From Bugula neritina (Eukaryota; Animalia; Bryozoa): DNA of 64,000 nucleotides. The notes beneath the pieces are model-generated. The model searched no databases. It was not told the DNA's origin and saw only the letters and a program-made list of their open reading frames with translations. The stretch covers positions 4,294,707 to 4,358,706 of the forward strand of contig OZ037767.1 of assembly GCA_964035545.1 (NCBI GenBank), in the 5' to 3' direction. Of the stretch, positions 2,834 through 38,970 are shown piece by piece (the first letter of the stretch is position 1; the number at the start of each line of letters is the position of its first letter). Position numbers and translations under genes: made by a program.

Positions 2834-3886
2834 ATGGGGCGGTTATTCGCAAACCCCGAGTTCTACACAATTTCTAACATCACAGAAGAGGTCCCAGAGA
2901 TGCATTGCTTGTCAGAGAATGTGGCTGATGCCAATAACTATGATCTAATTCATCAGTTGTATTGTCAGGTAGGAACCATAGAAGCACATGTGACTAAGAG
3001 TTTACTGTCATGTGGTGCAGGTGTGTGTGTGACATCAGTATTAAAGTTCTCCTGTTTGTGTACGTTATGAATAATAATGTTGATGTAGTGGTTAACTGAA
3101 ACTCTTGAGTATAAACAAAGTAGTAAATGGTCTGGTGGTACACATTTTAGGTTTTAGTAAAGCCTGTATGAATATTTAAAGTTGGTAAATTCCGTGTAAA
3201 TTCTTCTACACCACCGAATAATCTGACATAAAAATATACTTTTGAAAGCACTATGATGTAATTAGGTATACATTATGATTAGGTTCAACCATACAAATGG
3301 TTATATTATATTATAATCATAATGTGCTATTTTATTACATATTGTGTTATATGTTATTATATTTTCTCATTGTTTGTGTCTCATTATTCTGCATTATATT
3401 AGGTTTTGATACATTAAGTTTTTAATGAAAGGACTTGAAGTTTAGAAAATTGCAATGTTAAATTCTTTAAAACTGATTTCAATCATTCAAAGTTGTATTT
3501 AATGATTAAAAGCCAATAAAATGTTAGCAGGTATTTGTACCATGTGTAAACATGGTACCACTGGCACATTTAAGTTTTTTTAGAGCTTAGGCAGTTGAAA
3601 AATAAACTTTAACTTAGAATACTACCTATTATTCAACAATGCAAGTTTTTTTCTTTTCTAAAAATAAAAATTGCTTCAACTGTTTAGTTTCACAATTTTC
3701 TTCAATACTTGTTGACAGCAAATGTGTGTTGGCTACTTTATGATATGAGAGAATAGCCGTATACCTAATACATTGTAGTACTTAATGCTTGCAATATTTC
3801 AGAGCTTCGACATCCCAGATAAATCTTCTCACCAGTCAAACAGGAGCTCATATGTAAAGCTGAAATCAGATCACTGGAGAAGGTGA
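2834..3886 (+). CDS. Microprotein paralog 1 (MGRLFANPEFY family), 2 exons, about 72 aa
   Basis: Exon 1 2834-2968 encodes MGRLFANPEFYTISNITEEVPEMHCLSENVADANNYDLIHQLYCQ (45 codons, as in paralog 5), then CAG|GTAGG, phase 0. Preferred exon 2 is 3803-3886 after tatttcag (SFDIPDKSSHQSNRSSYVKLKSDHWRR*), with AATAAA at 4299. Exon 2 is uncertain; alternative acceptors end at 3150 and 3282. Confidence 0.75.
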
Positions 3887-5147
3887 CCGATTACAACAAA
3901 TACATGTACTTGAAACACTTAGCTCAAAACTCCTAACTCATACTCGGTGGGGGACAGAGCTCACCTTACTCTTTTTTCTGCCTCTTAGTCTATTTATCTG
4001 TACATAGACATCTACCATTGTGACACATACTATTTATAACTTTCGATGCAATCCTGTAATTTAAATTGCATGTCGGTGTAGATGTATAATAATAAGTAGA
4101 GACAACCAGCTTATCTTTTGCTATCATAAGCTATACTTATCACTTATGTCTACCTCTACTTGTGAATGTATTGTATAATTATATCTGCATTCATCATACT
4201 TATTTTGCATCTTGTAATACAATCATATTTGACTAAAGGGCTAATATCTGCCCTCCTGCTGTTCATTTTGTTTATTATATAATATAATATAGTGTGAAAA
4301 TAAATTAATTTTCTTGTTTATAACAAATGATATTACTTGCCACTTACACCATCATGTAGCAATTACTGTGTACACCTCCTTGCGCAAGTTTAGGCATGCC
4401 TACCACAACAATGTGATTAGTATATAAGGAAACCCGACACCTTACAGAGTAGGGGCTAATAACTTCTATTAGATGTAGTGGAACTACTTATAGTATACGA
4501 TAGCTGGGAAGGGGCCGTGAATAAAAAGACTATGAAGGAACTAGCATAAATGTTGCTTACATCTCACTTCTTTTTATGCATTTAAGTTCCAATAAGAAAT
4601 ACTAATTTGTGAGCCTAGTTGTTGATCTGTAGCTGTTCCTTAAAGCGGTCTTGTGGGGATGTTTCAGGTTGTGTAGGTTCAAGAATAAATTGAGAATTTC
4701 AATGACAACTTAGAGAGAAAGTTAGATGCTATTAAATAATCATGATAAATACAAATACAAATATTTCAACCCTGAGGTAGGTGTGGCAAATATAGAAACT
4801 GCAGCAGATACAAGATATAACAGCATATACAGTACGAAAAATTATAGCTATAGTGTCTAAAGTATACATATTTACCTACAGTGCCTATGAGCAAGCTAGG
4901 ATTACATAACTATTGCTGTAGTTACTACAACAACCACAACAGTGGTAGTGAGCATATTTATCAGGAAGGAAGTTATCTGTCCTTGAGCTAAACTAAGCTC
5001 TAAACTGCATTTGCTTGTTTTAATGGCATTTATACTCAATGTTTTGCCTTTGAAAGTGTTGATAGTTTGCAGGTCTTTTAAAATTTCTAGAGTCCAAAAC
5101 TTGATTGTTGCTTAGAATACAAGGACTGCTATCAATACATAAACAAT

Positions 5148-5245
5148 CTAGCTACTACTACTACTACTAGCTACTACTGCTACTACTACTGCTACTGCTA
5201 CCACTGGAGTACTGGTAGTATTACTACTAGTAGTACTACTACTAT
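5148..5245 (+). repeat. (CTA/CTG)n degenerate microsatellite
   Basis: ctactactactactagctactactgctact... Confidence 0.8.
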
Positions 5246-8111
5246 TGCTGACAGTATATAATCTATACAGTTATAAAGTTGCTTTAGTTTTTATATTTAA
5301 TTTATGTCTTCTGTTTGAAGTACTGGTTGTAAAACCACAACATAATGTTAGATATCAGGCAGCCCTAAGATCTAAACTCTAAAGTCACCAGACTTGCACT
5401 TGAGGCTTCATGATTCAATATGAGTAATAAACTTCTCTCTATGCAATTGTTGTTCATTTCTAAAGAGCAATAATCTTGCAAAGTCACGATGCAATTCGCA
5501 TATTCATTGTCACAGTGATCAGCTGGTAGTCTGCATGTTGTTATGGCAAGTCTAATCATAACCCAATGGGCTGAAAGAGTGAATCACTTTGGGAGAATTT
5601 TTATGATTATTGGGACGGCAGCTTTAAGAAGCTAGCCTTGAATGCATACCCAACTTAAGGCATCCCGGTGCTTCGCCTAGGTCACTGCTGTTCTAGCCAT
5701 GTGTGAACCATATTTCGTATGAATGATAATTCTTTTGTTAGTTGAAAAAGCAATATTTCATAATTTATTGCATATTTGTGTAATTAAATGTGCATTTTAT
5801 TGCTAGAAATTGCATAAAATCGTGCATGTGTGTACAATATGCTTCGATCAATGCAGAACTTTATCCATTTGTAAACAAGTAACGTTTGTTTATTAGTGGA
5901 CAAGGTCTGAGTTTAAAACCATTCTTAGATGATAATTTAATAAAACTGATGCCGACTAGTTTCTCAAGGGGTTAGCGCTCAATAGATGTTTTATGTTTCA
6001 TGTTTCTCAAATTTAATGTTTATGGAGAATCGAAGGAATTCAAGTTTAACTATTTTATTTTAAATACCTTTAATTGTATATGAGTGCTTATAAATATGCA
6101 TCATATTTTGTGTTTTTGTGCCAAGATTCTGAGAATTATAAAAGCTTTAGAGCTAGCCCTTGAGTTAATCCACTTTATGATCTTGTTTATAATCTTATAC
6201 TGTCATTCTATAATTTTCGCAGTATTTGGATTTAAAACATCATTGCTTTAAATAGTCAAAAAAGTTGCAATGCCTAAAGGCTGTCCAAATCAGATTTAAA
6301 TGCATAAGCAAATCAGGGGCAAAAAATACTTGATCACCATTTTATTGCAATAATTAAGTTAATGATCACACAACAACAGTACTTTTTGATATAGTTATGG
6401 TGATCCATATTTTCTACAGTAAATTCTAGAGGCTGCTATGCACTAATTTCAAATGGCTTATAATTTTTTAAAACATTATTGATTGAATTTTTAACTAAAA
6501 ATTTTACTTCATTGTTATAGTTTTTACTTCATAAAATCAATGCTTCTAACAGTGAAACCTTTATAAAAACTCATACATTACTACAAAACAGCATGAAATT
6601 TAACGTTCAATAATTTATTTTTCAGTTATTTTATATTTTAGCCACATTTATATATACAGGCAGTACAGAGAATAAGCTGTGATGCTGAAAACAATATGAA
6701 TGCAATATAATATAATATAATATAATAATATAATATAATACAATATAACAATTTATAATTTATGGTATTTCTGATATATGGCTTCGGCTGACAAAATGCA
6801 GTGTGAAAGCAGCTCATACTTGATGACTTGCAGAGCAAATTGAAAATAAGGAAACTGACCAACTGGTCAGAATAAATTGACAGATATGACTCACTCAAGG
6901 AAACACCAACTGGAAGTTATTTTGAATGCAATATAAATATTTTCGTTTCAAAAGTTCTCATACTGAATGCAAAGTTTGGTGTGAAACATGTTTTTTTGAA
7001 AAGCAACAACCTGATGCAATTTGCTCTTTATGACTTTGTACTAGCATGATTAATTAAGCAAATATGATATAAAAGCAAACTACTTGCACAAATTGCATAT
7101 TAGTCTTAAATGTCTTCAATTTCACATTAAAATTTCAAATGAATCAGCGCTGAACTGACAAAATATTTATTTCAGCATATTTACTTAAAATTTATAATTT
7201 GGTTTTAGACTAATTTTGTTTTACAGAATATTTGACTGGCTGTACAAGACAAACAATGGCAAGCGTAGTTATAAGAGAAACATTGTGTTACCCACAGTAG
7301 TTCGGTATTCTCAAAATGTGTTATTCATTCTCAAGCATCTCTAGCTTTGTTAATATAATGACCGCTTTTGTAAAACATTAACTCAAAAATGAAAGGGCTT
7401 TAGCTTGTCCATATACGTGGTAAATTCATTGCACTGAGAAACGTTCTTTAATGATTCAGATATCCTTCTGCAAGTAACCAATTCCTGTACAGATGACCAT
7501 GAGTGAGTCAAGGAAAGGAATGCTGTCTCATGACCGTGAGTTGGTCCACCTACACATCTAGTTCCCTGTTCAGTAACTACGCTGCTTTGACAGCACACAT
7601 CTACCTACCACACACATTGCAGCCTGCTTTTAATCATACAACTAGTCTGCTTTCAATCATCATTACTCTGTGTTCTAGATTCATAACTTTTCTGAATCAT
7701 TAATTGAAACAAGTTTCTTTGCTTTTTCACTGTTTTTTGAAAAAAAAACATTTTTTAAAGCAGATAATTTTACTAATATTTATCTATGAAATTGGACGTC
7801 AGGAGAACTGTTACATAAAGACATGGCTTTCTTCAAGGTTTTTATACACAAGAAACCCTGTGTTGATTCCAATTATAGTATTGAATTTATTAATATATAA
7901 AAAAGACCTCACAATATCAAACTAATGTTTATTACAAATGATTAGTTTTATATACAAAAACCCGGGCTTCTTAAATTTAGTTTAAATATGATAAATTTAC
8001 GTAAAGTTAGTGAGATAACAAGCCTATGATGATCTGCTCTTAACTCCAACTCCCCACTATTGTATGGCATGATAAAACAAAGCTATTAAAAACAACAGAA
8101 AAAAATATTTG

Positions 8112-8636
8112 GTCCCATATAAAATCCAACCTCTGACCTCCACGTGGGAGGGACTAGACGGATGAAATTCTGGCCAACAAGAGGATATGGTACACGCCAG
8201 GATAGGCCTAGCAAGCCACTGGTGCTCAAAATTGCTACAAACACTTAAGGAAAATGAAATTCGGGATGGATATTACGGAAACGAACCCTGGAACGGAAAA
8301 AACGGACTACGATTCGGAATACTGAACATTGGAACATATCGATAGGAGTCGGAAGAAATAGTGGAGAGTGGTATGGTCACGTTAGATGAAGACCAACAGA
8401 GCATCCAACAATGGAAGCCCTGAATTACACAATACCAGGAACAAGATCTAGTGGTAGTCCACGAAAGAGATGGCACCAGTACATTGACGATTATTTAAAA
8501 GAGAGTAATACCAACCTGGAGAGAGTAAACGTAGAAAGATTATTTGAAAACAGACAAGTATGAAAAAGCCTGATTAACTTTTCTACCTGCATGACAGGCA
8601 CTAGCCTAATTCGGAGTATAGTAAAAAGGTAAAAAG
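8112..8636 (+). mobile_element. Internally deleted, non-autonomous RTE-clade non-LTR retroposon
   Basis: The endonuclease start motif GLRFGILNIGT (about 8304-8336) is fused almost directly to an RTE-type C-terminus, WYGHVR*RPTEHPT...GTRSSGSPRKRW...ENRQV*KSLI. Short gtaaaaag-like tail repeats; 11-bp TSD AAAAATATTTG at 8101-8111 and 8637-8647. Confidence 0.75.
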
Positions 8637-9450
8637 AAAAATATTTGAATATTCTCAAATTTATATATTTCGATTAAAAAAGTTGACATATATAATTGCA
8701 GATATTTGTGACTATGTTGAGATATTTATTAGGCTTAATTACTAATTATTCCTAATGATATCTTAGCTGCAAATAATATATACATGTCTATAAGATATGC
8801 AATTACATAATAAAAAATATTCCAAACATAATTATTTAATAATTTAATTAATATTAAAATAGTAACAATGATAGTATTAGTACTGGTAATGGTGATTATA
8901 ACCATAATGTTGGCTATAGTAATAGTAATAGTAATGGTAAAGGTAATAGTAAAATTCATCAAAATTTGTCTTCACTAAAAATTAAAATACGCTCATTTTA
9001 CAGCAAGTTTTGTAAGTAAGTAAAATGAGTAACAATTCAATTTTCTCATCAAAACCATGCAATGTGTGTTTTCTTTTTTTTGATATCTCAACAGTTTTGT
9101 CATCCTATAAATCACCTTTCATATAACTTTGTTTGTTTTTCTTTAAATAATGATAGAATAAGTTCAAAAAACAAATCATATTGCTTCCTGTTTGTTTATT
9201 TGGTCAGGTAAAGTAAATAAAGTTATTGAGTTTGAAATTGGTTCACTGTGATAAACCTACGATGTCGTAATAACAATACGATAGCATAACAATAGCGTAC
9301 TCTATTACCGCACAATGAATAATCAGGGCCTGACTAGACTTGTGAGAGCGTAAGCTAGGCATTGTGGGTAGCATAACTTCCTCGAACCACTCAACTGGAA
9401 CTCACTGCTATTAATAACTATCTGGCAATGCAACATGCAGTCAGGTGTTA

Positions 9451-9483
9451 TCCAATGAGCAGACCCGCCCAAATGTATAAAAG
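9451..9483 (+). promoter_or_regulatory. Core promoter of paralog 2 (CCAAT, GC box, TATA)
   Basis: tCCAATgag at 9451, CCCGCCC at about 9464 and TATAAAAG at 9476-9483, 108 nt before the ATG. Confidence 0.7.
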
Positions 9484-9583
9484 GCAGTATTTTGGACATT
9501 TTGAAGCACACAGCCTTCAAGCACAGCTGAAGAAACTTACCACATATCAAAGTTTCTGTTTCTAACACACTTCAACCACTAAA

Positions 9584-9932
9584 ATGGGAAAATTATACGC
9601 AAACAAAGAATTTTATCAGATTTCCGAGTGGACTGAAGAAGAAGCATCACAACAGGAGTTTTATTCTCAATTTATTGTTGAAAAATCTTCAAGACCTGAC
9701 TATCATGCTACACAGCCATCGACTGGAAATATTTTATTTTCAAAACCAACTTCAGCATATTTGGTAAGTATTTGCACTTGATTGACTCAAAATAATACTT
9801 TGAAATACTAGAAATAATTATGTTCTCAAATTCAGCATCTTTTTTAATTAATTGAGTTTAAAAGAATTCATTTTATTTACTAAATTATAACAATTTTAGG
9901 TTCAGACTAATTCCTACAAAGCTCTTTGCTAA
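9584..9932 (+). CDS. Microprotein paralog 2, 2 exons, 70 aa
   Basis: Exon 1 9584-9763 encodes MGKLYANKEFYQISEWTEEE...GNILFSKPTSAYL, then TTG|GTAAGT. A 136-nt intron ends caattttag. Exon 2 9900-9932 encodes VQTNSYKALC*. TATAAAAG at 9476; AATAAA at 10419. Confidence 0.85.
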
Positions 9933-12511: not shown

Positions 12512-12740
12512 GGGAGTAGTTGTGGTCTACTGGTTAGAATATGGGCTGGTGTGGTATAGCAGGTGGTTATAGGTGGTGAGTTAGAAACCCTCCAGAGTCA
12601 TTGATGATGTCAGAAGGAACATAGTTGATACTGCATGCCGCCAAAGAAAGAGCCTCTTAAACCAAGTTGCCATTTCTTAGCTAATACACCCTTTCCATCA
12701 GGAGCTCGAGGGGAGGGGGGGGGGGTTGAACAAACATGAG
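12512..12740 (+). mobile_element. Old, diverged copy related to the tRNA-derived SINE family
   Basis: gggagtagttgtggtctactggttag resembles the SINE 5' end. cattgatgatgtcagaagg and ccctttccatcaggag align with the core and 3' part of younger copies. Confidence 0.4.
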
Positions 12741-15163
12741 TTTTCCAAGAGTATTCAAAGTGGGAAGTCTAAACTCACAATTCTAGTACTATTTTATATA
12801 GTAATGTTGCACTTTATAATTTATGTCCACTGCAGAAAATTAATGTTCTTCATTTTAGATTGACTATGAGTATTTTGACTAACATTCATAACTGACCATT
12901 AACAGCTAGCTTTTATGGTTTTGAGTTCAAGCTTTTAATTGATCTTTGATATAGAAAACTTTTTACTATGTAATGTAATAACAACGTGCAGCTCGCGAAT
13001 CCCAACAGCATCTTGATATGAAACTTGCATGCTCAAGTTTCTCAACCATGTGACAGTCTGAAATTTGCATACCAATTACATTCTCAGGTAACTCCCTCAA
13101 TAAATTCTTTCACAATTTTAAAAAGAAAATATTTGTATTTATATCAGTTCTCAAGTTACAGTCATATCTTCTCATCTTTCCAATTTGTACTTCTACCTAT
13201 ACAAGAGAAGACAACTACGAATATAATCAATATGTCTAGCTTATTCAACAATTTATAGGGAACATAACTCTTCGTTTTGCAAAGTTTTTACATCTGCTGT
13301 CAATTTTGTTGCTTTGTAGAGTTTTGATAATTTTAAATACACAAATATTGCAAGAATATTGCTGCAAAGTTTTCAATAGGTAAGAATTGACATTTTCCTT
13401 AAAGTACTCTCTTTAATTATAAGCATCTTTAGCTGCTAGCATATCTTTGGCTATAAGCATATGGTATCGATAATTCTGGCTCATAAAATATTGCTTCGAA
13501 GAAAAGTATGCTTTATCCAAGAAATCTATTTTGTTTAATTGTTGTTGCAAGCAAAACACAGTTGATATCTCTTTTAAAAATTAAAAATTATAGCAAACAA
13601 CTTCCTGAACACACAAAATTACCAACTATTGAGAATATCTTGAGTCAGACTTGTAGGTATTTGAAGTTATTTTCTTTTTTTTATTCACTGAACCCGTGTC
13701 ATGGTATTTAGTTCTTTTCTGTAAAAACTATCACATCATGACCTGCAGACATCTATAATATTCTTGCTAACAATAGTAGTAAAGTTTGAATTTGCATTAT
13801 AGTGCCTTATATTCACATCACGGAGAGGGAGGAGGGAGGAGAGGAGGGTTTTAGGACTGAACTAAAATATGCCATAACAGTTGAACAATCTAACAGTAGA
13901 TTAATTAATTAATTAATTAATTCTTACAAAGAGTTAAAATACTCTACACTCAGCTCACCTAAAAGCACTGAGATTCTGTGTCACTATAAACACTTTCTTG
14001 TGTCACCAGGAAGTTAAAGACCTATACCGACCTACCATGCATTTACCCAACATAGAATTTTTTCACCAACCCTGTACTTTATACAATGCAAGAAAAACAG
14101 TGTCTGAAAATTAGCATTTAACGCAGTTCCATTTTATATCATAAATTAGTTTGTTTTTCTGCTGTAAAACCTTTTGTGTTATGAAGTTTTAGTACATCTT
14201 CAGCTCTCTAAAGTCTTAGATGACAGCTTCGAGAACGCTAAGTTCACTTTTTATATAAAGTTTTAAGCAAATTGCACAGTAGTCTCGCCAGAGTATTGTA
14301 AAATTTATATTTTAAAAGAAAGAAAATAAAATATTAAAGTCACGTTTTCTAGCAACAAGCATACATACATATTTTGCATTCTTTTTTTTAATTTATTCTT
14401 CTATTTTATAATCAAATGTGTGAATCCTGCAAACATTCTGTTTTTACTATAATTAACAAATCATTTCTGAGGTGATAAGTGACTATTATTAAATTATCAT
14501 TAATAGTTAGCTGTAAACGTGACATGAAAGTTTGAAGTTCAGGTGACATGAAATCATAAGCAAATTAATTTCCGATCAATCTTTAAATGTAAAAATAATT
14601 TACATTTCCGATAACAAATTCTATAAATACATATTGTATTTGACCACATGTAAAGGTTAAACCTCGTATATTAAGCTGATAGTGGATATTTGCGCAGCTT
14701 TAGTGATGTCTAGTTTCTAAACTGCCTTAATAACAACAAGAGTTTAAATCTGTCATGAATAGAAGTACGTCTATACTGATGATGAGTGAATAACAAGCTT
14801 TATAGTGTAAAGCTATTGTTACATACATTATAGTTTATGTTTTGAGTTGGCAAACACAATAGTCAAAACCTAAAAGATATAATTGTTTTTGCATTTGCTT
14901 TTTATTTTTGTCATTACATGGCATGATTGTATTTTCTACTAACATACGCTGGCATGTTCTATGATATTGAAGTATTGCCAATTACTGCTGTAATATAGTC
15001 TGTACTTTTGGTGCATGTTTTCAACTAATATTTCTTAAATAAAGTTGCTATAAATGAAGGACATTTTTATCTGTGTCAACTTAGTAACCAATATAGATTC
15101 AGGTCTGATAGTAACCTGATGAAAATTGTATACATGTGTACATAAATATTACAACTTTATAAT

Positions 15164-15378
15164 AAACTCACGCAAGTTTATAGTCACCATTCCTGTGAGA
15201 AACCCCTGATAGAAAGGGTTTTTGTTGAAGCGGGCTAAGGACTTATTTAAATGAGGCACAGGAGCAATTATGACTGGATGCCCTCCCTAACATCACCAAT
15301 GGTCTTTGTCTGGGCTCGAACCCATGGCCTTCGTGTTTACCAGGCAAACGCTCTAACCCTTAGACCACGGCTGCTCCC
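15164..15378 (-). mobile_element. tRNA-derived SINE, full length
   Basis: Minus strand GGGAGCAGCCGTGGTCTAAGGGTTAGAGCG (A box) and GGTTCGAGCC (B box), core GGCATCCAGTCATAATTGCTCCTGTGCC. TSD (C)TTTATAAT at 15155-15163 and 15378-15386. Confidence 0.85.
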
Positions 15379-18300
15379 TTTATAATGATATACTAAATTT
15401 AATTAAAAAAATAAAAATATAGGTCTGAGTGTATAATGTAGTTTGTATAAGAGCTATTCTTCACTATATTATACTGTAACACATATTTCGAATGAGCTAG
15501 TTTTAGTATTAGATGGTAGATGGCAACTCATTGTTAGATTCTTTCTCACTGTAGCTGTTTTAGTCTTTACCAGTAGAGAGAACTCTTGCATGTTTTAAAG
15601 TCTTCATCCCTTTGAGAACTCCTGAAGGCACAGAATCAATTGTGATTGGCTGCACTTTCTGACATCACCAATACTCTGAACTGTGTCACACTAGACCTGC
15701 ACTCTAACCTCTGACCTCTAGGCAAATTAGCAACTTATCATTGTGTTTTCGACAGCATATTATGCAAATGGATGCCCATACGAATTAATCTGTGCTTGCG
15801 GCTTGCATCAACTTATGGTTGTAGTTTTGCATAACGCGAATGATGAAAACACAATGTAAATTTGTTAATCTAACTCTATTTTAGTCTAGTAAATATATAT
15901 GAAGATCCTTATAGCGGCTGTGAACTAAATTTGTTCTCTTACAGCGCAGTTAAATTTAGCTGCAACGATTTCACATGTTAACTAATAAGACTTGGTGTGT
16001 TCTGTAATAGTATTTATATTATAAAATGAAATTTTCAAAATGCATGGCTCAATAATTTATACTTTATTATTAAAAAGCACTATTTAGAATGCTTGTAATA
16101 TTTACAGAATGCTGATTAATTTCTCTGAAAACATTATTTCTAGAAATACTATTCAGCATATTATACAACACTATTATTCAGATGTTTACATCAAGACTTG
16201 CACAACCTGCTATATACGTTTAAAAATAAAAAAAATCACACTAATGTTATTTCTATAAAGCTAAAATATTAATTTCTCTATGATAATTTAATAAATCAGC
16301 TACATTACGTCATTGTTTATAGCATAGACTTGAAAGGTGATGCCATTTAAATTATGATACTGAATAACAAGCTACATGATAAGAAACTGTATTGCATAAT
16401 GATGAGACATACTATAGTAATACCTTATTCACATTATTATCGGATTTGTCTAATCAGTTTGAATAAATTGCTAAATAAATAAACCATTAGAGGCAATAAA
16501 TTGTGCCTTATTAGTTTTTATAGGAGTTCATATCAGTTGAAACATGTTGCTATTGGCTTGTGCAACTTTTCTTTACATTCATTCTACAGACTTTGACAAA
16601 TTTATTTGATTCACACCATATTGTTGTTATGGGTCATAAATTATTCCACTTCCTTCTTTTGTGTGCAACATAATAAGAGATGCCACCATGTCCCTAATAC
16701 CTAGGGTCTGCGTTATTGTATGCAGTCTGAAAATAGAAATTATAACTAAATAATTAGACGTAGCCTATAATTATTATGTCGTCTAACATTTCACATAGCA
16801 TATGATTGTCATGCCCAGTATAACTTTATACTCAGCTGTATATCATACAAAATGCAATCTAACAAAATATCTTTGTGTAATTATAAACTCTCCTTTTCTA
16901 AACTGAGACTCCAGTGTTGTGTTCACTACGGATGATGTATTCCATGAAAGTTTTAAACTTATGACAGCTAAAGTCTCATGAAAAACATAATAGAATTATT
17001 AAAAAACTTTAAATTACAACTTTTATTGAAATTAACAAATTTTTTGAATTGTTCATTATAATAATTGTATCAAAACCGATGTAATAAAAGTTTTCTTAGT
17101 GTGGCTTTATTAAACAAAGTTTTTTAGCCAGTACAAACACTAATTACGAAGACGTTTTAACTTGTTTCTAAAAAGACATTACAAATATTTTCTACTAAGC
17201 CATATGCCAGAATTAGATTTAGAGTATTTACAATACCTTTTGCTTTATTTTTTTTTCACCCGAGTTTAAAAGATATGGAAAAGTTACTAGAAACTAAATT
17301 CTTGTTATTGTTATTTTTGATATGACTTGCCAAATTTTTATATTGATTTCTATTGCTTAATAAAATGTGGTTATTTCTTAACATGACATTTTGCTTAATC
17401 AATGTTTTCTTTGTGTTTTCTACTTGCATGCAAAAACAGAGCCTTCTGTATAACAAACCATTCTTACATGATCAAGTTTGATATTGAAAAAAATTATTTT
17501 GTTGCAAAAGCAGAAGGTTATATTTTTAAAAAAGAATAATAAATGAAATAATTAGTTATATGCCTTCTATTGGAGATAGATTTCAGTGCTATACAATTAT
17601 CATTTGCATTGGTTTGCTTGATAAATAATTAATAATTTTGTTTTTAAAATCAGCAATAGGATAAATAAAGCAATGATGTCAAAGTTTTTCATTTTATAAG
17701 AAAACAATCTTTCCAGATAAATTTCCTTTCCAAAATAAAACTCCCATGCTACCATGGGAAGTATGACAAAAATTATAAATTATCAGGTGCCTTTTGCAGT
17801 AATCTTAGAACTTTCCAGATCATTGCAAAGCTACTTGTTATAAGTCACCCCGTGTAACCTAATTACAATCTTCTCTCCGGAATATGTAGGATAAAATAAT
17901 GAGTCTACACCGCCTAACATATTAGATTAACATCCGTCACACCTACTTGCTAACTTGCAAAGATATGCTTTAATTGTAAAATGACGAGTTTAATATCATA
18001 TAGCACCTAAACCTACATTTTATGAGTTGTCAAAAATAGTTTCAAAATAATATTATTGAAGTTACAAGCTGCTCACCTCAACATCTAACATCCTCGTTCA
18101 GTGATGTTACATACGTCTGTGTTGCAATATTTAGCCTTCCACGTTAATCAACTCTTCTACTGCTGCATTTCTCTGTTAGTTGACCAACACACCATGGTGG
18201 TGCCTCATTTAACATGTAGGTGCCATGGTGGTGCCATAAACATATGTCTAATAAAAGTGTTAGAAAGTTTGAGTGGGAAAATTATCCTGTTGACTGAAAA

Positions 18301-25822: not shown

Positions 25823-26422
25823 TTAGAAGCAAGTGTAGCCTTTTGTCATATTATACGTATTTCTGTCTGCCATCTAAAATATTTTAAAGAAACAGTAGCA
25901 AAAAAACTATAGTAAGGTATGCAAGATTTTAGCAAAAGCCATTAAAAATTCAAGTAAGAAAGATGTTTGGAAGCGCTAAAAGTTTCTCTATATATTTAAG
26001 TAAGAAAGAAAGATCTTATTTTGTACAACTTCTGTATTCATAAAATTTAAATAAGCAATGTTTTGTTTTATTTCCCAGTTAACATTTTGCAGTTTCAAAA
26101 TTTTAGCAATATTAGAAATGTTAGAAACACAAAATTTGTTTTGGAAAATTGTTGAGTTTAAATTTGGTATTTTTAGCTTCCTTCTATTCAATTTTGTTAA
26201 CTAAACAATTGATATAGAAAATCCAACAAGTTAACCATTGCTCACCAAATATGCAGCAAATGCAGAACTTCTAAAGATAGCACCAGCTTGCAATATTTTA
26301 GGCTCAAACGCCCTGCTTTTTAAGCTTTCATCACCACCGATCATCACTAAATTGCCTGCAGCTACCTCTTCGCTGATGTTGTGGATCTCGTAAAACTCGG
26401 GGTTAGCGTTGATTCTGCCCAT
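25823..26422 (-). CDS. Microprotein paralog 3, 2 exons, 75 aa
   Basis: Exon 1 26422-26246 encodes MGRINANPEFYEIHNISEEV...GAIFRSSAFAAYL, then TTG|GTGAG. Exon 2 25873-25823 after attttag encodes MADRNTYNMTKGYTCF*. TATATAAG lies 99 nt upstream of the ATG. Confidence 0.8.
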
Positions 26423-26513: not shown

Positions 26514-26521
26514 CTTATATA
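26514..26521 (-). promoter_or_regulatory. TATA box of paralog 3
   Basis: TATATAAG on the minus strand, 99 nt upstream of ATG 26422. Confidence 0.65.
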
Positions 26522-29500: not shown

Positions 29501-30577
29501 TCAAACATGCCGGACATGATATTATATGCCTGCATAAACTAAACCTTGCAGTAGCCACGGAGTATACATTCTACCAGGAAGTGTGTAGGAGTTACAGCAA
29601 TATGAGTTTCTTAGGTTACACAACGTGAGGAGGTATAATTGGTCAGCTGAGCTGCATGGAACAAGTCACTGTTGAAGCTTATTCACGTGGCTGAGTGTCC
29701 TTGGATCAACCTTGCACAGGATAGGAAAGCTATTTCTGTAAACCAAATCCAAGTGTTATTGGATTAGAAGTAATTCAATAAATATTTACTCAATTGATGG
29801 TCACTAAAGCCGAACTTACAGCTGAAGTGTTTTTTCCGTTTTCTAAATAGTGAGTATATGTAGTTTCATAGGATAAACCCAATGTTATTAGACATCTAAT
29901 TATTCTGTAGACTAATCACTAGTGACTGGTCACCAGTATATATTAAAGAGATGGTGATGACAGATGGCAAATCTTGCTGACAGTTTTACTTTTCTGACCA
30001 GACAAAGTTTATAATAATCACTCATAAAGTTGATGTTTTCAACTCCCAGTATAGCAGATTTATGTGATAATTATCACCCATATCCAGTGCAAGATTGAGT
30101 TCAACATAGGATTAACGGCTACCAATAAATTATTATCACGTGTTTGTCATGTTTATTTTGTTTACAATCTCTACAGCCTAGCATTTTAGGTGAAAATGAT
30201 ATCACCTTAGATTCACAATCAATTAGAATATTAAGTTCATTTATTGTTATATTCTCATATGAATAGTTCCAATAAAACTGCACCATGGCTTTAAAATTTC
30301 TGATTTTGAAAAACGTTTGCAGCTCACCGACTTTGAAGTTTAGACTAAAGCCAATTTGTAAACAATGTGATTTATCAACCCTCTCAGTTTTCTTTGCAAA
30401 ACTGTTGAAGTTGTCTCCTCACATATTTATTTAATAAACTTTTAAAAAAATGCAACAGTGTCCTAGAAGTGCATCTCGCACAATGTGAGTTGCTATTACA
30501 AAACATTGTGCTAGAGATGTTATTTTATGTTTCAATTTTTGTTCAGTCAACAGCAATAGTCTTTGCAATGACTAGAG

Positions 30578-30738
30578 AAGGTAGCCTAAGAACACGGGAG
30601 CACTACCTGGCAGCACAGAGGATAGCCTAAGAACTAGAAGTTTTACCTGGCAACACAGAGGATAGCCTAAGAACTGAAGCGCTACCGGGTAACTCAGAAA
30701 ATAGCCTAAGAACAAGGAAGCTTACGCTGGAACAGGGA
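30578..30738 (+). repeat. About 40-bp minisatellite, 4 units
   Basis: TAGCCTAAGAAC core at 30582, 30623, 30663 and 30702. Confidence 0.85.
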
Positions 30739-30808
30739 AGTAGTTTAAAAGCAAGGAGCATGAGATAAGAATGAAGAAGGTTATGACCTTCAGTGTATTG
30801 TTATCATT

Positions 30809-32364
30809 CACGGGCTTTCCATCACCGGCTTTCCATGTACCGATCTCAGCGAGATCGATCCATGGAAAGATGTCAAAGATCGATCTCAGTCGTTCTGAGC
30901 TGGTCGGTCTGTAGAGCTCGAACTCAGATCGATCTCAGTGAGATCGATCCATGGAAAGACTCCAGATCGATCTGAGAAGTAGAAAAAGACTGTTCGCTAA
31001 AATGTTGTCCGCTGATAAAAATGATAACTTATTGATAATTACCAAGCAAATTACTTAATAATTACGATAGCCACATTTTCAGATGCCAAAACTTTGACTT
31101 TCAGTACTATGATTAAAAAAACTCAATTATATAAAAGTATAGTCGGTAGAAATTACAAAAAATTGGAGCATTTAAATTGAATTTAAATGACTAGTAAAAC
31201 TTACTTTCATTAGTTATTTGCTGCGTAATTTCAAGCCTAACAATCCTGTAAGTTTATGAATAATCTGCAAGATAGCTATTAATTTTATTTAAGCTGTTAA
31301 GCTAAAAAATTAAAAGTTATTATCTTAAATTGGCTATATTACTTTACACTAAAAGCTTTGTTGTGTATTGTTTACAAGCACCATTAATTTTTAGACATCA
31401 ACAATCTTGTTTTTTAACCTCAGCAGCTTTAATCATCCAGATTTGTGAACAAATTATATTATTAAAGTACTCTTCACTTAAGAGGAGGCAACTCCGTGAG
31501 ATCGATCTGACACTTCTCATGGAAAAACGATCGATCTGAGAGATATGTTCAGATTGATCTCAGCGAGATCGATCTGAGATCGGTACATGGAAAGCCGGTG
31601 CATGTACCGATCTCAGATCGATCTTGCTGAGATCGATCTGAGACATGTGCTCAGATCGATCATTTTTCCATGAGAGTGTCAGATCGATCTCTCGAAGTTG
31701 CCTCCTCTTAAGTGAAGGATACTTTAAAAATATAATTTGTTTCCCTATTTGAGTGATTAAAGCTACTGCTGTTGAAAACAAGATGGTCATAGTCTAAAGT
31801 TTAATCCCAGCTATAAACTATACGCAGCAAAGCTTTCAGTGTATAGTAATTTGGCCAATTTAAAATAATTAATTTTAATTTTTTAGCTTGACAGCTTATA
31901 TAAAATTAATGGCTGTTTAGCAGATTATTAATAAACTTACAAGATTGTTAGGCTTAAAATTACAAAGAAAATAGCTAATGAATTAAGTTTTATTAGTCAT
32001 TTAAAATCAATTTAAATTCTCCCATTTTTTTACCTTCTACTGCATATAATTGAGTTTTCCTAATTATTGTACTGGAAGTCAAAGTTTTGGCATCTGAAAA
32101 AGTGGCTATCATAATTATTTATTACTTTGCTTAGTAATTATCAATAAGTTATCATTTTTATTAGCAGACAACATTGTAGCGCGCAGTCTTTTTCTACTTC
32201 TCAGATCGATCTGGCGTCTTTCCATGGTCTTATTGACATGAGATCGATCTGAGTTCGAGCTCCACAGACCGACCAGCTCAGATCGACTGAGATCGATCTT
32301 TGGCGTCTTTCCATGGATCGATCTCGCTAAGATCGATCTGAGATCGGTACATGGAAAGCCGGTG
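30809..32364. mobile_element. Non-autonomous DNA transposon (MITE), outer copy, interrupted in its left TIR
   Basis: Left TIR is CACGGGCTTTCCAT (30809-30822) resuming as GTACCGATCTC at 31604. Right TIR is GAGATCGGTACATGGAAAGCCGGTG ending at 32364. 3-bp TSD ATT on both sides; many subterminal AGATCGATCT palindromes. Confidence 0.85.
30823..31600. mobile_element. MITE of the same family, inner nested copy in opposite orientation
   Basis: TIRs CACCGGCTTTCCATGTACCGATCTC and GAGATCGGTACATGGAAAGCCGGTG. 3-bp TSD CAT at 30820-30822 and 31601-31603. Confidence 0.88.
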
Positions 32365-32905
32365 ATTAAGCATCCTCCAAGTGCTTTGATGGTAGAATCT
32401 TATGGCCTGCAAATTAAAAATCTAATGGCATCGCCATTACATCCAGCTAGATCAGATTAGCTGACAACATTACACTATATATATATAACTAAATCAACAA
32501 GCACCTGCACTGGTATTGTACAGATTTCTTTTACAATACCAGAAAGAAAATCCCCTTCAGTCGTCTTTGCATATCTTTTACTCCTATTTAGTAGCTCTCC
32601 GGTATAACTTGAATTAGTCACAGGGTCAGGTTAGTATTGGCTTCTATAAACTACGATGGTTTTTATCAGGAGCGAATAACTTCCAGTTGTAAAGGTTGAC
32701 TTTATTGATAATGCAAGAGACTCGCAGGTCTTTAGGACTTGAAGCTAGCCAAGCTCTGTTTTGAATACAGAAACATGTAAATGTGCAACAATCTAGTCAT
32801 TTGAAACTAGTTTATGCAGGTATCATGTGGTTTTATATACACGTTTGGCTCATTGAGATGTAGAGTGATATGATCTATAACATTGGAGTTATGAATACAG
32901 CAGCA

Positions 32906-33132
32906 GGGAGCAGCCGTGGTCTAGGGGTTAGAGCGTTCGCTCAGTGAACATGGGGCCATGGGGTCATGGGTTCGAGCCTGGACAAAGGTTATTGGTGATG
33001 CCAGGAAGAGCATCCAGTCATAATTGCGCCTGTGCCTTATCTAAATAAGTCCTTAGCCCGCTTTAACAAAAACCCGTTCTATCAAGGGTTTCTCTCATGG
33101 ATGGTGACTATAAACTTGCATGCGTGAGTTTT
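32906..33132 (+). mobile_element. tRNA-derived SINE, full length
   Basis: Same family, with A box TGGTCTAGGGG and B box GGTTCGAGCC. 18-bp TSD ATTG(G/A)AGTTATGAATACA at 32882-32899 and 33133-33150. Confidence 0.88.
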
Positions 33133-34792
33133 ATTGAAGTTATGAATACATTGTTCTGAATGCTAAATTATTTTCCAACTATCATATTAAATCATTTTTC
33201 GAAAACAAATATTTAATGTCAACATGCATTATTTCCTCAAGCAGAAAACTTTGTGCAAATCAAGAAGAGATAACTCCAAAAGAATTCATGTTGATGCTTA
33301 TTTATACCTTGCGGCCTAGCAACAACTCAGAGTGTTATCATGAAACTGCCAAAATTACTTCTCTGTGTTTAGATAAATTTTTAGTAAAAAGTTGAGGCCT
33401 AAACATTATAATGAGTAATAATTAACAACTATATTTATTCAATAATAAATATCATTAGTTACTTCAAACCTTTACGAGACATTTGGAGAAAAATAAACAA
33501 ATTAAGCAGCTATTATATACCGTTCATCTTCCTTTTCAGCTATATTTGGCATGTAAACTAAATGAACTCAACTAAAGCAGTAATTGTACTCTATAGTTAT
33601 CTAAAGTATAAATTGCTCTCACTCCTTGTACTATACCTATGTAGTGACAGGCTTCCTGTAGAACATGGCGGGAAGAAATGAATCTATTCATGCTGCTTGG
33701 AAAAGCGACCATACTATTGGTGGGTATCATGTAAAAAAAAGCTGAGTAGAAGTACTTGCAGAAGTTAAGCATCACCCAAAGCAATCTTCTTGACTCTACA
33801 GATTATACCATTTTCACTATCACATACTTGATATTGTTGAATATTTATTCCAAGGTTTAAAGTTGCTATTTTCAAATATTTAAAATGAAAAGATGCTCAA
33901 CGTGACTTTTTATTCAACTAATAATTGATAGCAAATGCTAATGTAAACTTCATTTAAAGATGTTCAGCTTCAAAGCAAGCCTCAGAATCTACTACAGTGT
34001 CTGCGGTCTGGAGGCAGTAATAATTATATAGGTTTAGTAGAATACTGGAGGATTTGCTCTCAATCTTTCTACTTCGAAAACTTAGAGCTTTCTAGCCACA
34101 ATTCAAAACGTAATCTTTTTAAATTGCCTTGCTGTGATACATTATTTACTTCTAACTAAGATCTAAACTAAATTCACATACTGTCATTTGCATGCTGCCA
34201 CTTGATCAGGGTACACAATTAAACAGTGAACATATTTCAAAGCATTTAACTTTTTGAAATACATGTAATTGTTGCTTTCTAGTGTAATAGCCATTGGGCA
34301 TATATTTGGGTTTTAGAAGCAAGTTTGCTAACAAAAGAAATGAATATTATTGTTTAGTGCTGACATATTACTATAGCTTATAATATTAATACTACGATAC
34401 AATAAATATTTAAAAATTTATTACAAACTTTTTCAAACAAAACAATCTCAATATGCAATATTAAATTGATAATTTGTTAAAACTAACAAAATAACATGCA
34501 AGTCAATGATATAGTTAAATAACGAAAACATAATAAATAGTGTATTACAGTTTAATTTAAGGTTGATCACAGATAGGCTTTGTTCACCAGCATTTAGAAA
34601 TACTCAGACTGCTGAAAGAATTTGGCCTCATTTGTTGAGTAGACAGATGCACCGGGTGTATTGGAAAACACGTCACGAGAAAGTTAAAGGGCATCTTGAC
34701 GAGGGTAGTGTGCACTCTCTTCTATCTAGAAGTGATATAAATATAAATAATCCTATTTCTTGCTTTTGAGCCAAAATTACTTTCAAACACTT

Positions 34793-35153
34793 CTATAGAA
34801 AGCGCTTAGCATGGTGAGTTTGTATCTGTTCTGGATATCATACATACAACTATTAGCTATAATATTGAGAAATTAATCTAAAACTCTTTCAAGGGATAAG
34901 CAACTTTCGTCTAAAAATCTATTAGGAATACTAGAAAAGAGATATTTTACTTGCTTACCAAGTGCATTGGAAGAAGATGTTCTAAGCATAATACAGTATT
35001 CCCATAAACTAAGATTCCAGAACTATTATTATTTGTTGAAGTGTTTTTGGCGAGAAATTTAGGACTGGAGCAAAGTTCTTCCCCTGCTGTTGTCTCTTCC
35101 TCAGTCCATTCAGACATTTGATAGAACTCGCTATTAGCGTAGAGTCTTCCCAT
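34793..35153 (-). CDS. Microprotein paralog 4, 2 exons, about 75 aa
   Basis: Exon 1 35153-34959 encodes MGRLYANSEFYQMSEWTEEE...LPMHL, then TTG|GTAAGC. Preferred exon 2 is 34825-34793 (IQTHHAKRFL*, 133-nt intron), matching the length and pattern of paralog 2 exon 2 (VQTNSYKALC*). Other AG acceptors exist nearby. Confidence 0.8.
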
Positions 35154-35245
35154 TATTAAGTGTTAGGATAAGTTAGTTTGATGATAGGTTATGATGTTTA
35201 GCTAAGAGTCAGTCTGCATCTGAGCTTCTAACTGCTTCACACGTC

Positions 35246-35253
35246 CTTATATA
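35246..35253 (-). promoter_or_regulatory. TATA box of paralog 4
   Basis: TATATAAG on the minus strand, 100 nt upstream of ATG 35153. CCAAT motifs lie at about 35305-35330. Confidence 0.65.
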
Positions 35254-38200
35254 TCATTGAGCAGAAAGAAAGGCTGTAGTTACTTCATGACAGACTGAAA
35301 TTGTCCAATCATTTAGTTGGCTCAGCCAATGCCGTCACAACTGCCCTCTTCTCTATTGTTTACCGCCCATGTACGAGCGCGCAGGTACCTTCGTAAAAGT
35401 GTTTGATTAAAAAGTGATAAATGCAAATCCTACGCCTCCACCCAACTAAGCCGCTTGTCTTATTGGATAGAATATTAAAAGTATATTCGACCACTTTCCA
35501 ATTACAAACAAGTAACTTCTTTCCATTTATCTGTCAAGCTGTCACAGATGAATAAGTGATATAATTTGTTGGCTGTTGCTTGTTTTTACTGCTTGGTTGC
35601 CTGCAATGGTGAAAGGTAAAACATGTGCTTATATAACTAATAACACATTTAAGAATACAGTTCTGCAGAGAAGAATTTTATTTCAAAATTGTAAGTTCAT
35701 AATTGAACCAACAGGTCTATTGCTTGTTTTATCATTAGATATAGTTTATATATTATAATTTTTATTTAAAAGCTAGTGACTATATTTTAAAGGCCCGCAA
35801 ACCCTTATAGGAGATAGAATAGCAATTATATCTGCTAATATAAAAGCTAAACAAACACATCTCTATAGCAACTAGAATTGTGAGCTATAGTAAAGTAGGC
35901 CAATGTTTTGTATCAGTTCTGTACTCAAGATGTAACTCTAATTAATTTTCTTTAAAAAAAGCTGCTTGCTAACTAAAAATTAAACTGATAAACTATGTTT
36001 TATCAGAAAAAAAACACTTTTCTGTTAAATCACAAGATATTTAATGCATATTGACATATATCCATGACCACCTATGTATATACCAAAACACTGACAAAAG
36101 GAGAAAATTTAAGAGTGCATTTGTGTTATATTTTTTGCCTAAGAGGTGTTGATTTGATTAGTTTCTTAGCAGTAACTCAGACAGCAGAAGTGGTCTGAGC
36201 ACTTTCTGTACCAGAAGCTTCACAGACGGCTATTTTAAGTTAACCAGTTAAAATAACACTCATCTGTAAATCAATCAGCTAATAAAGAGAACTTTCATGG
36301 ACGTTGGTGTTGCAAGAGTAACAGCTAACGAAAAAAGAGGGAACTACTAATACTTTTACAGATATAATAAAAATTATTTTAAATACAGTGCTTTTCAAAG
36401 GAGTAAATATATCAAAAACTCTTAATATGTTCTACAAGTCTATTATTAAGCAGTGGATACAAATATTTAAATAAATTCATCAAAGATTGCTTATCTTATT
36501 AAATTTAAAACGTACTTTCTGTAGTGATAATACAGAAAAAACTATATACAAGTTCACATTCCTAAGACATTCACAAATCTGGCTATTTTAGAAGGCTTCT
36601 AATACCCAACACGTGTTTGTAATATTGCTCTAAACAACATGGTCAACTGTACTTCAAACCAAGGTCCTGACCCCAATATAAGAAATATAGCAACACCATG
36701 AATTTTTTATAGCTAAGAGAATGAAGATCAAACCGCTTTTAGCGTAATGAATTGTAAAATGATTTGTACCAAGCAGAATATATATAGCATGAAGTCATTA
36801 AAAATCAACAAGCGCTTCCTCCGGTAGTTTCTTTCTTGGCACAACTAGAAATAAAAATAAAATCGAGATGGAAAAACACTCCTACAGTTTTTAACATGGA
36901 CATATCCGCTAATTTGTTATGATTTATAATAAAAACAGTTTTAAAATTAAGACACTTCCTAGGTTTAGGTAGTGTTGATTAAAAACTCATTATTCAAAGC
37001 CTCCACACACCTGGGTGGGCAGGTTGATCAGCTCATGTAGGTGTCAACTCATGACCATTATACCTCATGAGGTCTGCTATCAGTATATTTAGTATGCTAG
37101 TAACACGTGTTTTTACTAGCCACATGTTCAAATATATCTCTTGCCAAGTGTTTACTTCAAATTATAAACATAGTTAGTCATTCATTCCTATGCAATCAAT
37201 CACACGCTTTCAATGAAAAAGTGATATATTATAATCATGTTCTGGCTTAGGAGTTTACAATAATATTGCTTCCATGTCGTGGCTCGAATGAAAATACACT
37301 GATTCAGGTTATATTTATTTTACCAGCTGGTAATGTGCTTCTAAAAATAATTTGGAATTGCTCAATAATGACACGACAGTTTCTGTCATAGCATCACCAG
37401 TTACAAAATGGCGACTGGGATTGAAATTTATGACGAGGGTAGGTAATACCACTGGAGCCAACTGCCAGTGCTTCCTCCTGCATGGCCAAAAACAATGCCG
37501 TTGGCAATCACTCAACATACCAACATGTACATGTTTGCTTAGTTAATGCAGCTGATTCAGCCACACGTGTGAACAGAACTGTCCGTTGTCCACGCTCACT
37601 TTGATTGCACAATTCAGACTAGTATCGACTGGTTTTACTTCTGCATGCTTTGGCTATTACACACAGCCAGTTTGTGTAAAGGCTTGAGAAAAGATAGAAA
37701 CTCTCTACTGTTTTAATCAAGGTTGCTGCACAGTTATGTCATAAGCAAAGTCAATTCACGGACTGAATAGGATTGATGAATAACTTCCTGTATAATAATT
37801 ATATGTTTATTGTATAATTTCTAACGAAAAAAGTGTAGATTTTTTTTAAAACTGATTCAGATATTTAATAATAAACTGATTTTATTCTGTAATCAATTGC
37901 TTAAATTAAAATTATTCCCATCATGTCTTTTTTCGTCATAGATATTTATTAATAAAATTCTATAAAAACTTTTAAACTTCTATTTTCGCATTCTATTACT
38001 TAATTCTACTTTGATAGTTGACATTACTTATTTTAATATAATACTGCATCATCACAGCCTCTACATATTTAGTAATATGAAGCACACGCACAAGCTAAAT
38101 TTGGGGCAAACATAAGGTGTTCATTTATTGAAGTAAAAAGTAGTTATGAGCATTATGTGTGGGCAATTGACTCTTAATCTCAAGTACCTTAATTTAATTT

Positions 38201-38571
38201 TGGGCCCACAGTGGACTTGATAAGAAATCTAGTTGCATACACACTGCTGGTCTAAAAGCCTGACATTGATTTTACTAGAATACACTGCTTCCTGATTATG
38301 CAATCAATTAACCAAAGGAGGGAATGCTGTTTGCTCTGCACTGAACGGAAGGAATCTATATATAGCCCAGTGTCCTTGTGCTGTTACTTCACAATTAAAT
38401 TACAGCTTTCCATCCGGCACTCCCTTCAACATAACCAAAATTTCATTAGTCTTTTGCTAAATTTACCAATAATTTTTAGCATATGAGACCTGCACACATT
38501 TTCCATGCCAACGGCTTAATTATACAAACTGTTCTATTAATCATCTTTCAAGCGACACAGTCAGTTACTGG

Positions 38572-38579
38572 TATATAAG
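38572..38579 (+). promoter_or_regulatory. TATA box of paralog 5
   Basis: TATATAAG, 107 nt upstream of ATG 38679. Confidence 0.65.
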
Positions 38580-38678
38580 TTAGGGAAGTCCTCCTCGTCA
38601 CGAACACTGTAAAGCCAACCATTGCAAGAGTCAGAGCAAATTAAACTAAGAATAAGAGAATTTATTTTTTCAGTGATT

Positions 38679-38970
38679 ATGGGTCGCCTCTTTGCCAACC
38701 CGGAATTTTATGAAATCTCAGCTATAACTGAGGAAGAAACAGTCTTGAAATCTTGTTTGGAAAACTTCAGCCAGTTGAATCAACACGGAAATTATTTAAA
38801 TAACTTCTCAATGGTAAGTCTGTCTTCATTCATTAGCAACAGATTTGCATACTGAAATCAACCTTTCTTCTTTTATAGAAGAAATTATAAAATGCTGAAA
38901 GACATACGTTACTTAGTAAATTTATCCAGCTATTTGCTTTTAGGTATTTCCTAATGAAAGTAACACAGTG
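38679..38970 (+). CDS. Microprotein paralog 5, 2 exons, about 48-53 aa
   Basis: Exon 1 38679-38813 encodes MGRLFANPEFYEISAITEEETVLKSCLENFSQLNQHGNYLNNFSM, then ATG|GTAAGT. Exon 2 is either 38944-38970 (VFPNEVTQ*, 130-nt intron) or 38879-38890 (KKL*). TATATAAG at 38572. Confidence 0.8.

Follow-up and report, generated by a model that had tools for sequence, protein, structure and literature searches.

Five paralogous microprotein genes of Bugula neritina share a conserved 19-residue N-terminal module, and most of the family carries miR-2 sites

The window, which is the whole 64,000-nucleotide stretch of Bugula neritina DNA that was analysed, contains a cluster of five paralogous genes, p1 to p5, each of which has one intron and encodes a product of 70–78 residues from two exons. 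It is well supported that the protein family is undescribed, lineage-restricted, and missed in part by annotation. The explanation that best accommodates the data as a whole, to which we give slightly better than even credence, is that the five genes arose by tandem duplication and encode acidic microproteins of the cell interior, which are controlled by miR-2 and act as short-lived binders through a shared N-terminal module.

The start codons and N-terminal sequences of p1 to p5 match positions 2834(+), 9584(+), 26422(-), 35153(-), and 38679(+) exactly, as proposed in the initial annotation. The genes are composed of the following features:

2834..2968, plus strand: p1 exon 1, 45 codons, codons 1–19 being the motif; orthologue EB796_024198
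3803..3886, plus strand: coding part of p1 exon 2, 27 codons and stop; NCBI model P0005, acceptor conserved
9476..9482, plus strand: p2 TATA box, also kept in locus L010
9584..9763, plus strand: p2 exon 1, 60 codons; EB796_024199
9900..9932, plus strand: coding part of p2 exon 2, 10 codons and stop; NCBI model P0002
10008..10015, plus strand: p2 3'UTR miR-2 site (K-box, 8-mer), kept in the sister lineage
25823..25873, minus strand: p3 probable exon 2, 16 codons and stop, inferred from the acceptor and frame conserved in L011
26246..26422, minus strand: p3 exon 1, 59 codons; orthologue in L011–L013
26515..26521, minus strand: p3 TATA box
34566..34572, minus strand: p4 3'UTR miR-2 site (7-mer), with a conserved polyA signal downstream of it at 34422
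34684..34725, minus strand: coding part of p4 exon 2, 13 codons and stop; joint seen in RNA of runs X1 and X3
34959..35153, minus strand: p4 exon 1, 65 codons
35247..35253, minus strand: p4 TATA box
38572..38578, plus strand: p5 TATA box
38679..38813, plus strand: p5 exon 1, 45 codons
38944..39042, plus strand: coding part of p5 exon 2, 32 codons and stop; GT..AG joint seen in RNA of runs X2 and X3
39111..39118, plus strand: p5 3'UTR miR-2 site (8-mer), carried together with exon 1 by one spliced RNA contig

Phase-0 GT donors follow codons 45, 60, 59, 65, and 45 of p1 to p5, within the predicted range of 45–65 codons, and are kept in a second B. neritina lineage. The second exons, which had been described as very short, comprise 10–32 codons, and the description thus does not suit all of the genes. 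According to the NCBI model, the p1 protein has 72 residues and its intron of 834 nucleotides is removed at junction 2968/3803. The p2 protein has 70 residues, and its predicted junction 9763/9900 is the one given by the sister-lineage NCBI model. The p3 junction predicted at 26246/25873 has a conserved acceptor and keeps the 16-codon frame; the joint remains a probable one, and the protein including the probable exon 2 would have 75 residues. The p4 acceptor had been placed wrongly at 34825; the RNA joint puts the junction at 34959/34725, giving a 233-nucleotide intron and a protein of 78 residues. The p5 junction is 38813/38944, with an intron of 130 nucleotides and a protein of 77 residues. 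The promoters are of the TATA type, and RNA contigs show both the transcription of p4 and p5, with 5' ends near 35208–35211 and 38630, respectively, and the splicing of their introns. A search for promoter words yielded only TATA and a CRE-like word, the latter non-significant. Contigs of p4 reach great depth in four runs from as many studies; contig depth is, however, a poor measure of expression level and cannot rank the genes. The depth of the p4 contigs would also suit a storage protein or an effector made in large amounts, as opposed to a regulator that acts at low dose.

The N-terminal module has the consensus MG[RK]L[FY]AN[KP]EFYx[IM]Sx[MIW]TEE (19 residues). The motif begins at residue 2 in every member and contains no indels, and G2, A6, N7, F10, E18, and E19 are invariant in 23 of 23 distinct N-termini. 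Relative to the sister lineage, codons 2–19 carry 11 synonymous and two non-synonymous differences (pS 0.21, pN 0.009, Fisher P=3e-7), far from the neutral ratio of 1, and pN is 0.05 in exon 1 outside the motif. Between paralogues, pooled pS is about 1.0 (saturated) and pN is 0.24, which bears out the observation that the protein is conserved while its codons differ. These codon comparisons demonstrate strong purifying selection on residues 2–19. Outside the motif, the paralogous proteins cannot be aligned. The products of exon 1 have pI values of 4.2–5.1 and lack an N-terminal hydrophobic stretch; in some relatives, exon 1 ends in a hydrophobic stretch. In the AlphaFold model built from alignment A4, residues 8–16 are helical with a pLDDT of about 65, and the confident part is the variable tail, where several rows of the alignment contain intron read-through. 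The PTB-ligand pattern NPxY occurs in none of the 23 N-termini. A single incidental NxxN is located in the variable part of p5. Judged by eye, the tail of one relative may resemble the GH3 helix of Reaper, and the start may resemble Arf GTPases; neither likeness was given any weight.

Profile searches of the whole genome (216 Mb) returned p1 to p5 and nothing more, the next-best match (E=6.8) being interrupted by a stop codon. About 14 additional relatives come from marine metagenomes, the hosts of which are probably bryozoan. Searches of sets of 5.8 billion and 1.84 billion sequences converge on about 19–21 clusters, none of which has a named source other than a bryozoan, and relatives were not found in viral contigs, prokaryotic contigs, or plasmids. 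To date the range of the family is limited to Bugula and to marine samples in which bryozoans are probably present. A second species has two paralogues about 7 kb apart (overlapping loci L022 and L024). All branches of a tree built from 22 columns fell below the support threshold, and the three genes lacking a K-box cluster weakly together. Searches of Pfam, NCBIfam, and PDB with the family gave nothing credible, in keeping with the initial view that it belongs to no known family. The genes had also been expected to escape annotation owing to products shorter than 80 residues; the sizes agree, but NCBI already lists p1 and p2 as hypothetical proteins EB796_024198 and EB796_024199. A repeat or transposon origin was ruled out by the presence of only five copies, the saturation of synonymous sites, and selection. 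The flanks of the genes have identity at chance level, as expected from the earlier claim that they do not align and are not a repeat, and the restriction to a single cluster and the absence from viral and prokaryotic contigs likewise do not fit a transposon or viral reading frame.

The 3'UTRs of most family members contain a conserved island, the miR-2 seed site. CTGTGAT ranks first among 7-mers shared 200–1000 nucleotides downstream and occurs in seven of ten genes with unalignable flanks (expected 0.065 each; Bonferroni 0.008), and its antisense in none of the ten. With the interval widened to 200–1400 nucleotides, CTGTGAT still ranks first (Bonferroni 0.09). The spliced RNA contig of p5 covers 38675–39138. 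The word AAGC, which pairs with miR-2 bases 11–14 as additional 3' pairing, stands just upstream of six of eight sites and four of 30 other K-boxes (P=0.002, in a test set up post hoc, when the sites had already been seen). The genome carries two miR-2 hairpins, both on contig C4. The K-box is absent from the UTRs of p1 and p3 and from L016. Among the conserved words of fly and worm 3'UTRs it is the most frequent (PMC1309705), and the site therefore speaks for miR-2 control, not for any pathway. A literature search found no paper on miR-2 targets in bryozoans, and genes of this family seem to rank with the earliest concrete candidates for such targets in a bryozoan.

In the explanation that we favour, the 19-residue module would bind a single conserved cellular partner, probably through its free N-terminus, and would fold upon binding. 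The proteins may work by amount, as competitive inhibitors or adaptors. The expression pattern of each paralogue would be set by its own promoter, and miR-2 together with AU-rich elements would cap or clear the message. The arrangement would obey the same logic as the reaper and Bearded clusters of the fly, arrived at independently. If so, insects and a lophotrochozoan would each have evolved, on their own, a cluster of small genes with one short motif and K-box control. The partner is directly testable with a peptide of 19 residues, and the alternative readings are mostly specific candidates for it.

The motif may after all have some known relatives, given its resemblance to a segment of PAS domains. 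It might descend from, or mimic, the strand–helix–helix segment of the first half of PAS/LOV, in which case the products would be PAS-fragment microProteins that interfere with PAS proteins of this genome, such as KCNH/EAG channels or bHLH-PAS factors, and a microprotein would have originated from a sub-domain fragment. We regard this as unlikely, if the strongest of the alternatives. A language-model search with P0002 gave PAS clusters for nearly all listed matches (0.85–0.87), but atlas scores below 0.9 are leads only, and p4 exon 1 had no matches. With the motif profile, this segment is recovered in register from all 12 of the prokaryotic PAS domains examined and from both KCNH-type PAS domains of Bugula, and 11 of these 14 outscore the best of 33,606 background residues; however, the comparison set was picked via a domain chosen by eye, and helix-capping patterns can converge. 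Profile–profile alignment to PAS gave a probability of 84% and a pairwise P of 7.7e-6 over 18 columns, which is non-significant at library scale (about E 0.2 scaled to Pfam). Pfam, NCBIfam, and PDB contain no PAS match to the family, and a home-made PAS profile gives 2–9 bits for most members. A full PAS domain of about 100 residues at the Pfam/NCBIfam cut-off was not found, the remainder of the domain being absent from the microproteins. The invariant PAS glycine is missing in 23 of 23 N-termini, the next Tyr is mostly Met or Ile, and the fixed start at Gly2 is left unexplained. It is less probable still that both ideas hold together, so that a miR-2-gated cluster, an independent lophotrochozoan counterpart of reaper/Bearded logic, would use a module from a PAS fragment to inhibit transcription factors or channels that contain PAS, for instance while zooids develop or regress.

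The module could instead consist of stacked short motifs, a PP2A-B56 docking site (residues 13–18 and the acidic tail) and/or an ATG8-binding LIR (residues 9–13), which would make the proteins phosphatase decoys or autophagy adaptors. We consider this improbable. The LIR-like pattern, acidic-[WFY]xx[LIV], matches 19 of 23 N-termini, yet is too common for diagnosis. Loose B56 rules, as published (PMC10970375), fit all 23, with hydrophobic residues 13 and 16, Ser14, invariant E18, and acidic residues 19–20. The strict pattern [LMFI]xx[ILV]xE is found in only seven of 23 in the conserved register (12 of 23 when any register is allowed), since 11 sequences carry Met and five carry Trp at position 16. 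B56 and LIR patterns are frequent by chance, and neither explains the invariant G2, A6, and N7.

An abundant effector or housekeeping protein, such as an ion-binding, chaperone-like, or myristoylated membrane-tethering one, fits the strong TATA boxes, the acidic composition, and the very deep p4 contigs of four studies, but depth gives no basis for ranking genes, and the conserved miRNA sites suggest dosage control. Invariant Gly2 and the small residue 6 match a relaxed myristoylation pattern, whereas the strict pattern, that of PROSITE, is violated by Arg or Lys at residue 3 in 23 of 23. We give little credence to an effector in place of a signalling regulator.

Even less probable are reaper/hid/grim-like IAP antagonists with an unusual Gly-start binding motif, possibly serving polypide regression. 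In favour are the short clustered genes conserved at the N-terminus only, the aromatic residue that most members have in fourth place once Met is removed, a hydrophobic stretch closing exon 1 in some relatives, and miR-2 sites (seven of ten genes) as in reaper, grim, and sickle, a shared trait that is not diagnostic. However, IAP-binding motifs require N-terminal Ala, rarely Ser (PMC7290580), found after Met removal in none of the 23, which all have Gly2, and span 4–8 residues rather than 19. A death trigger is also hard to reconcile with very deep p4 contigs in routine samples, and no homologues of these genes have been reported outside flies (PMC11463336). Bearded-like Neuralized inhibitors downstream of Notch are the least credible candidates: the K-box, the cluster of small genes, the Brd boxes in L019 and L025, and the GY box in L019 are outweighed by the lack of NxxN, which Neuralized binding requires (PMC12678834), in the conserved 21 residues of all 23, of Su(H) sites in the 1.5 kb that precede each of the five genes, of a Pfam ESM4 match (a genome ESM4 search was blank too, but had no positive control), and of a linked Hes gene, the only Orange-domain match being on another contig, C2.

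The initial analogy to both Drosophila complexes gained one independent point, the conserved miR-2 K-box, and the claim of non-homology is supported because their defining motifs are absent. With reaper/hid/grim/sickle, to which no sequence similarity was detected, the Bugula genes share a small-gene cluster, N-terminus-only conservation, and a 3'UTR miR-2 K-box; they differ in Gly at residue 2, the 19-residue motif, and one intron each. With the Bearded family/E(spl) complex, they share clustered small motif-only proteins and the K-box, with Brd and GY boxes in few relatives, but have no NxxN in the motif, proximal Su(H) sites, or ESM4 match. The family resembles PP2A-B56 LxxIxE ligands in the order hydrophobic-x-x-hydrophobic-x-E followed by acidic residues, and departs from them in 16 of 23 sequences, where the fourth position is Met or Trp. 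The first half of PAS/LOV in KCNH proteins and prokaryotic sensors shares [FY]-A-N-x-x-F-x-x-[ILM]-[ST]-x-hydrophobic-[ST]-x-E-E in register, of which the microproteins have only about 18 residues and not the PAS glycine. Like microProteins of the Id/emc type (PMC6003976), the members of the family are small and have a single likely interaction module, but they have no established larger parent protein.

The window encodes a genuine and hitherto undescribed family of microproteins. Its five two-exon genes (p1–p5) have reading frames that start exactly where the initial annotation placed them:

2834, forward strand: start of p1, predicted product 72 aa
9584, forward strand: start of p2, predicted product 70 aa
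26422, reverse strand: start of p3, predicted product 75 aa
35153, reverse strand: start of p4, predicted product 78 aa
38679, forward strand: start of p5, predicted product 77 aa

Nine of the 19 N-terminal residues are invariant among p1–p5, and the resemblance stops near residue 20. Across the complete 216-Mb assembly, profile searches picked up p1–p5 as the sole credible matches. The motif has no match in Pfam, NCBIfam or the PDB, so the earlier statement that it belongs to no known family holds; the closest database proteins, EB796_024198 and EB796_024199, are annotated as hypothetical in Bugula neritina, which points to this bryozoan or a cryptic sister as the source. Identity between the window and other B. 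neritina sequences (L010, L011 and L014, which cover the other assembly and the metagenomes) is 83–88%, consistent with cryptic species. Between orthologues, codons 2–19 of the five genes pooled contain 11 synonymous differences against 2 non-synonymous (pS 0.21, pN 0.009, Fisher P=3e-7), a ratio far from 1 that bears out the proposed purifying selection on an N-terminally anchored module. The remainder of exon 1 is under weaker constraint (pS 0.11, pN 0.05, P=0.046), with a pN above that of the motif (P=0.007). Synonymous sites are saturated between paralogues.

A phase-0 GT donor closes exon 1 in every gene and is retained in the sister B. neritina lineage. A TATA box is located 99–108 nt upstream of the ATG in p2–p5, and p1 has weak candidates only. 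RNA-type contigs from four studies, mapped onto window positions 33900–39850, cover the exons and UTRs of p4 and p5, and adapter-bounded contig ends lie immediately 3′ of the TATA boxes. Both genes are transcribed and spliced. The p5 joint, 38813 to 38944, has GT..AG ends; that of p4 runs from 34959 to 34725, which replaces the acceptor at 34825 suggested previously. The p1 and p2 junctions were taken from sister-lineage NCBI models, and that of p3 is predicted from its conserved acceptor and frame. The first exons encode acidic sequence, and none of the five products has a signal peptide. Each exon was used as a search query on its own. Short repeats are dispersed in the window (15086–15636, 33064–32907, 39257–39348, 49739–49887 and 53573–53721), and the one near 39300 draws many unrelated RNA contigs.

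Most genes of the family also have a conserved miR-2 site in the 3′UTR, which is new here. In an unbiased count of all 7-mers 200–1000 nt 3′ of the ATG in ten non-redundant genes, the miR-2 seed site CTGTGAT (K-box) ranks first, occurring in 7/10 genes (expected 0.065 each, Bonferroni 0.008) and on the antisense strand in 0/10; it still ranks first over a wider interval (Bonferroni 0.09). The flanking sequence is at chance identity between genes, and the site is therefore retained as an island. The p5 site shares one spliced RNA contig with exon 1. AAGC, which pairs with miR-2 bases 11–14, lies shortly upstream in 6/8 sites; in this test, chosen after inspecting the sites, the figure is 4/30 for other K-boxes and 4% for random flanks. 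The p4 sister allele has lost this extra pairing. No miR-2 site is present in p1, p3 or the comparison locus L016, which cluster together weakly in the tree. The source genome encodes two hairpins with a mature arm complementary to CTGTGAT. They are in tandem, 162 nt apart (G000:C4:8614760–8614988, L043), and both score below the Rfam cut-off yet have the canonical mature seed. In two distant relatives (L019:1650 and 2128; L025:2021), the K-box is joined by GY and Brd boxes, which are absent from the Bugula genes. The fly K-box occurs on E(spl)/Bearded genes and reaper/grim/sickle, and on ~260 genes overall (PMC1309705), so its presence points to control by miR-2 without identifying a pathway.

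Profile searching across 1.84 billion representatives produced 14 matches, and further searches converged on ~19–21 clusters. Every non-Bugula relative comes from marine metagenome or Logan contigs, and the marine relatives share TATA boxes and phase-0 donors with the window genes. Clustering is probably common to them too, because two contigs overlapping end to start place two paralogues ~7 kb apart. A record whose name begins BRYA16 appears to derive from a North Pacific plastic-debris study, in which bryozoans supplied 30–90% of eukaryotic rRNA reads (PMC5069773). The viral and prokaryotic collections searched yielded no relatives. The family is apparently bryozoan-restricted, but this does not prove that other phyla lack it, because small genes frequently go unannotated. 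NCBI contig VXIV02003502.1 carries two diverged copies of p4 (L026:3786 and L026:10001, annotated EB796_025084), with changes at residues 4, 5 and 8. They occupy a ~6.2-kb tandem unit alongside unknown ORFs without Pfam match, possibly a capture by a mobile element, and such copies were not found in the source genome.

Left of the window (G000:C3 ~4,234,000–4,293,000, L027–L032), Pfam identifies a tyrosine phosphatase and an innexin, beyond which is a long gene that by eye we take to be APC-like. The right side (L033–L038) contains AAR2 (Pfam) and, presumably, judged by eye, WSC-domain, ankyrin/EF-hand, FKBP, STIP1-like and heparanase-like genes. A 194-codon ORF at window 59487–60071 (reverse strand), without Pfam match, probably belongs to the next gene as one of its exons.

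We lean towards a mechanism in which the proteins would be translated, bind one conserved partner through the module and act by amount as inhibitor or adaptor, with miR-2 limiting dosage; the combination as a whole is somewhat probable. The motif could instead be a PAS fragment. A language-model search with P0002, the NCBI model matching p2, listed PAS clusters (0.85–0.87). The motif profile selects the same segment in 14/14 LOV/KCNH-type PAS domains, 11 of which outscore the best background, and aligns with the PAS profile with a probability of 84% (P=7.7e-6, equivalent to an E of ~0.2 for a library the size of Pfam). The motif profile found no such segment in the three bHLH-PAS/PASK-type fragments, the PAS glycine is absent from every family member, and the remainder of the domain is missing from the microproteins. 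We regard the likeness as a tentative resemblance, not as membership. A PAS-fragment microProtein is unlikely, and a PAS-derived inhibitor a little less likely still. A ligand of PP2A-B56 or ATG8 is similarly unlikely. Of 23 distinct family N-termini, 19 match a LIR-like (ATG8-binding) pattern, only 7 have the strict B56 pattern (PMC10970375) in conserved register, and none has NPxY (PTB). That the proteins are abundant effectors is improbable; p4 contigs are very deep in 4/4 runs, contig depth being no guide to ranking genes.

An IAP antagonist of the fly reaper/hid/grim type is slightly more improbable, because the binding motif requires Ala or Ser at the N-terminus (PMC7290580), where each of the 23 sequences has Gly. 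A Bearded-like function is very improbable: the NxxN that defines the Bearded family (PMC12678834) is absent from the motif, and neither a Su(H) site close to the genes nor a Hes gene linked to the cluster was found. The proposal of an analogous, non-homologous system is partly supported: the family parallels the fly reaper and Bearded systems in the design of its cluster, not in membership.
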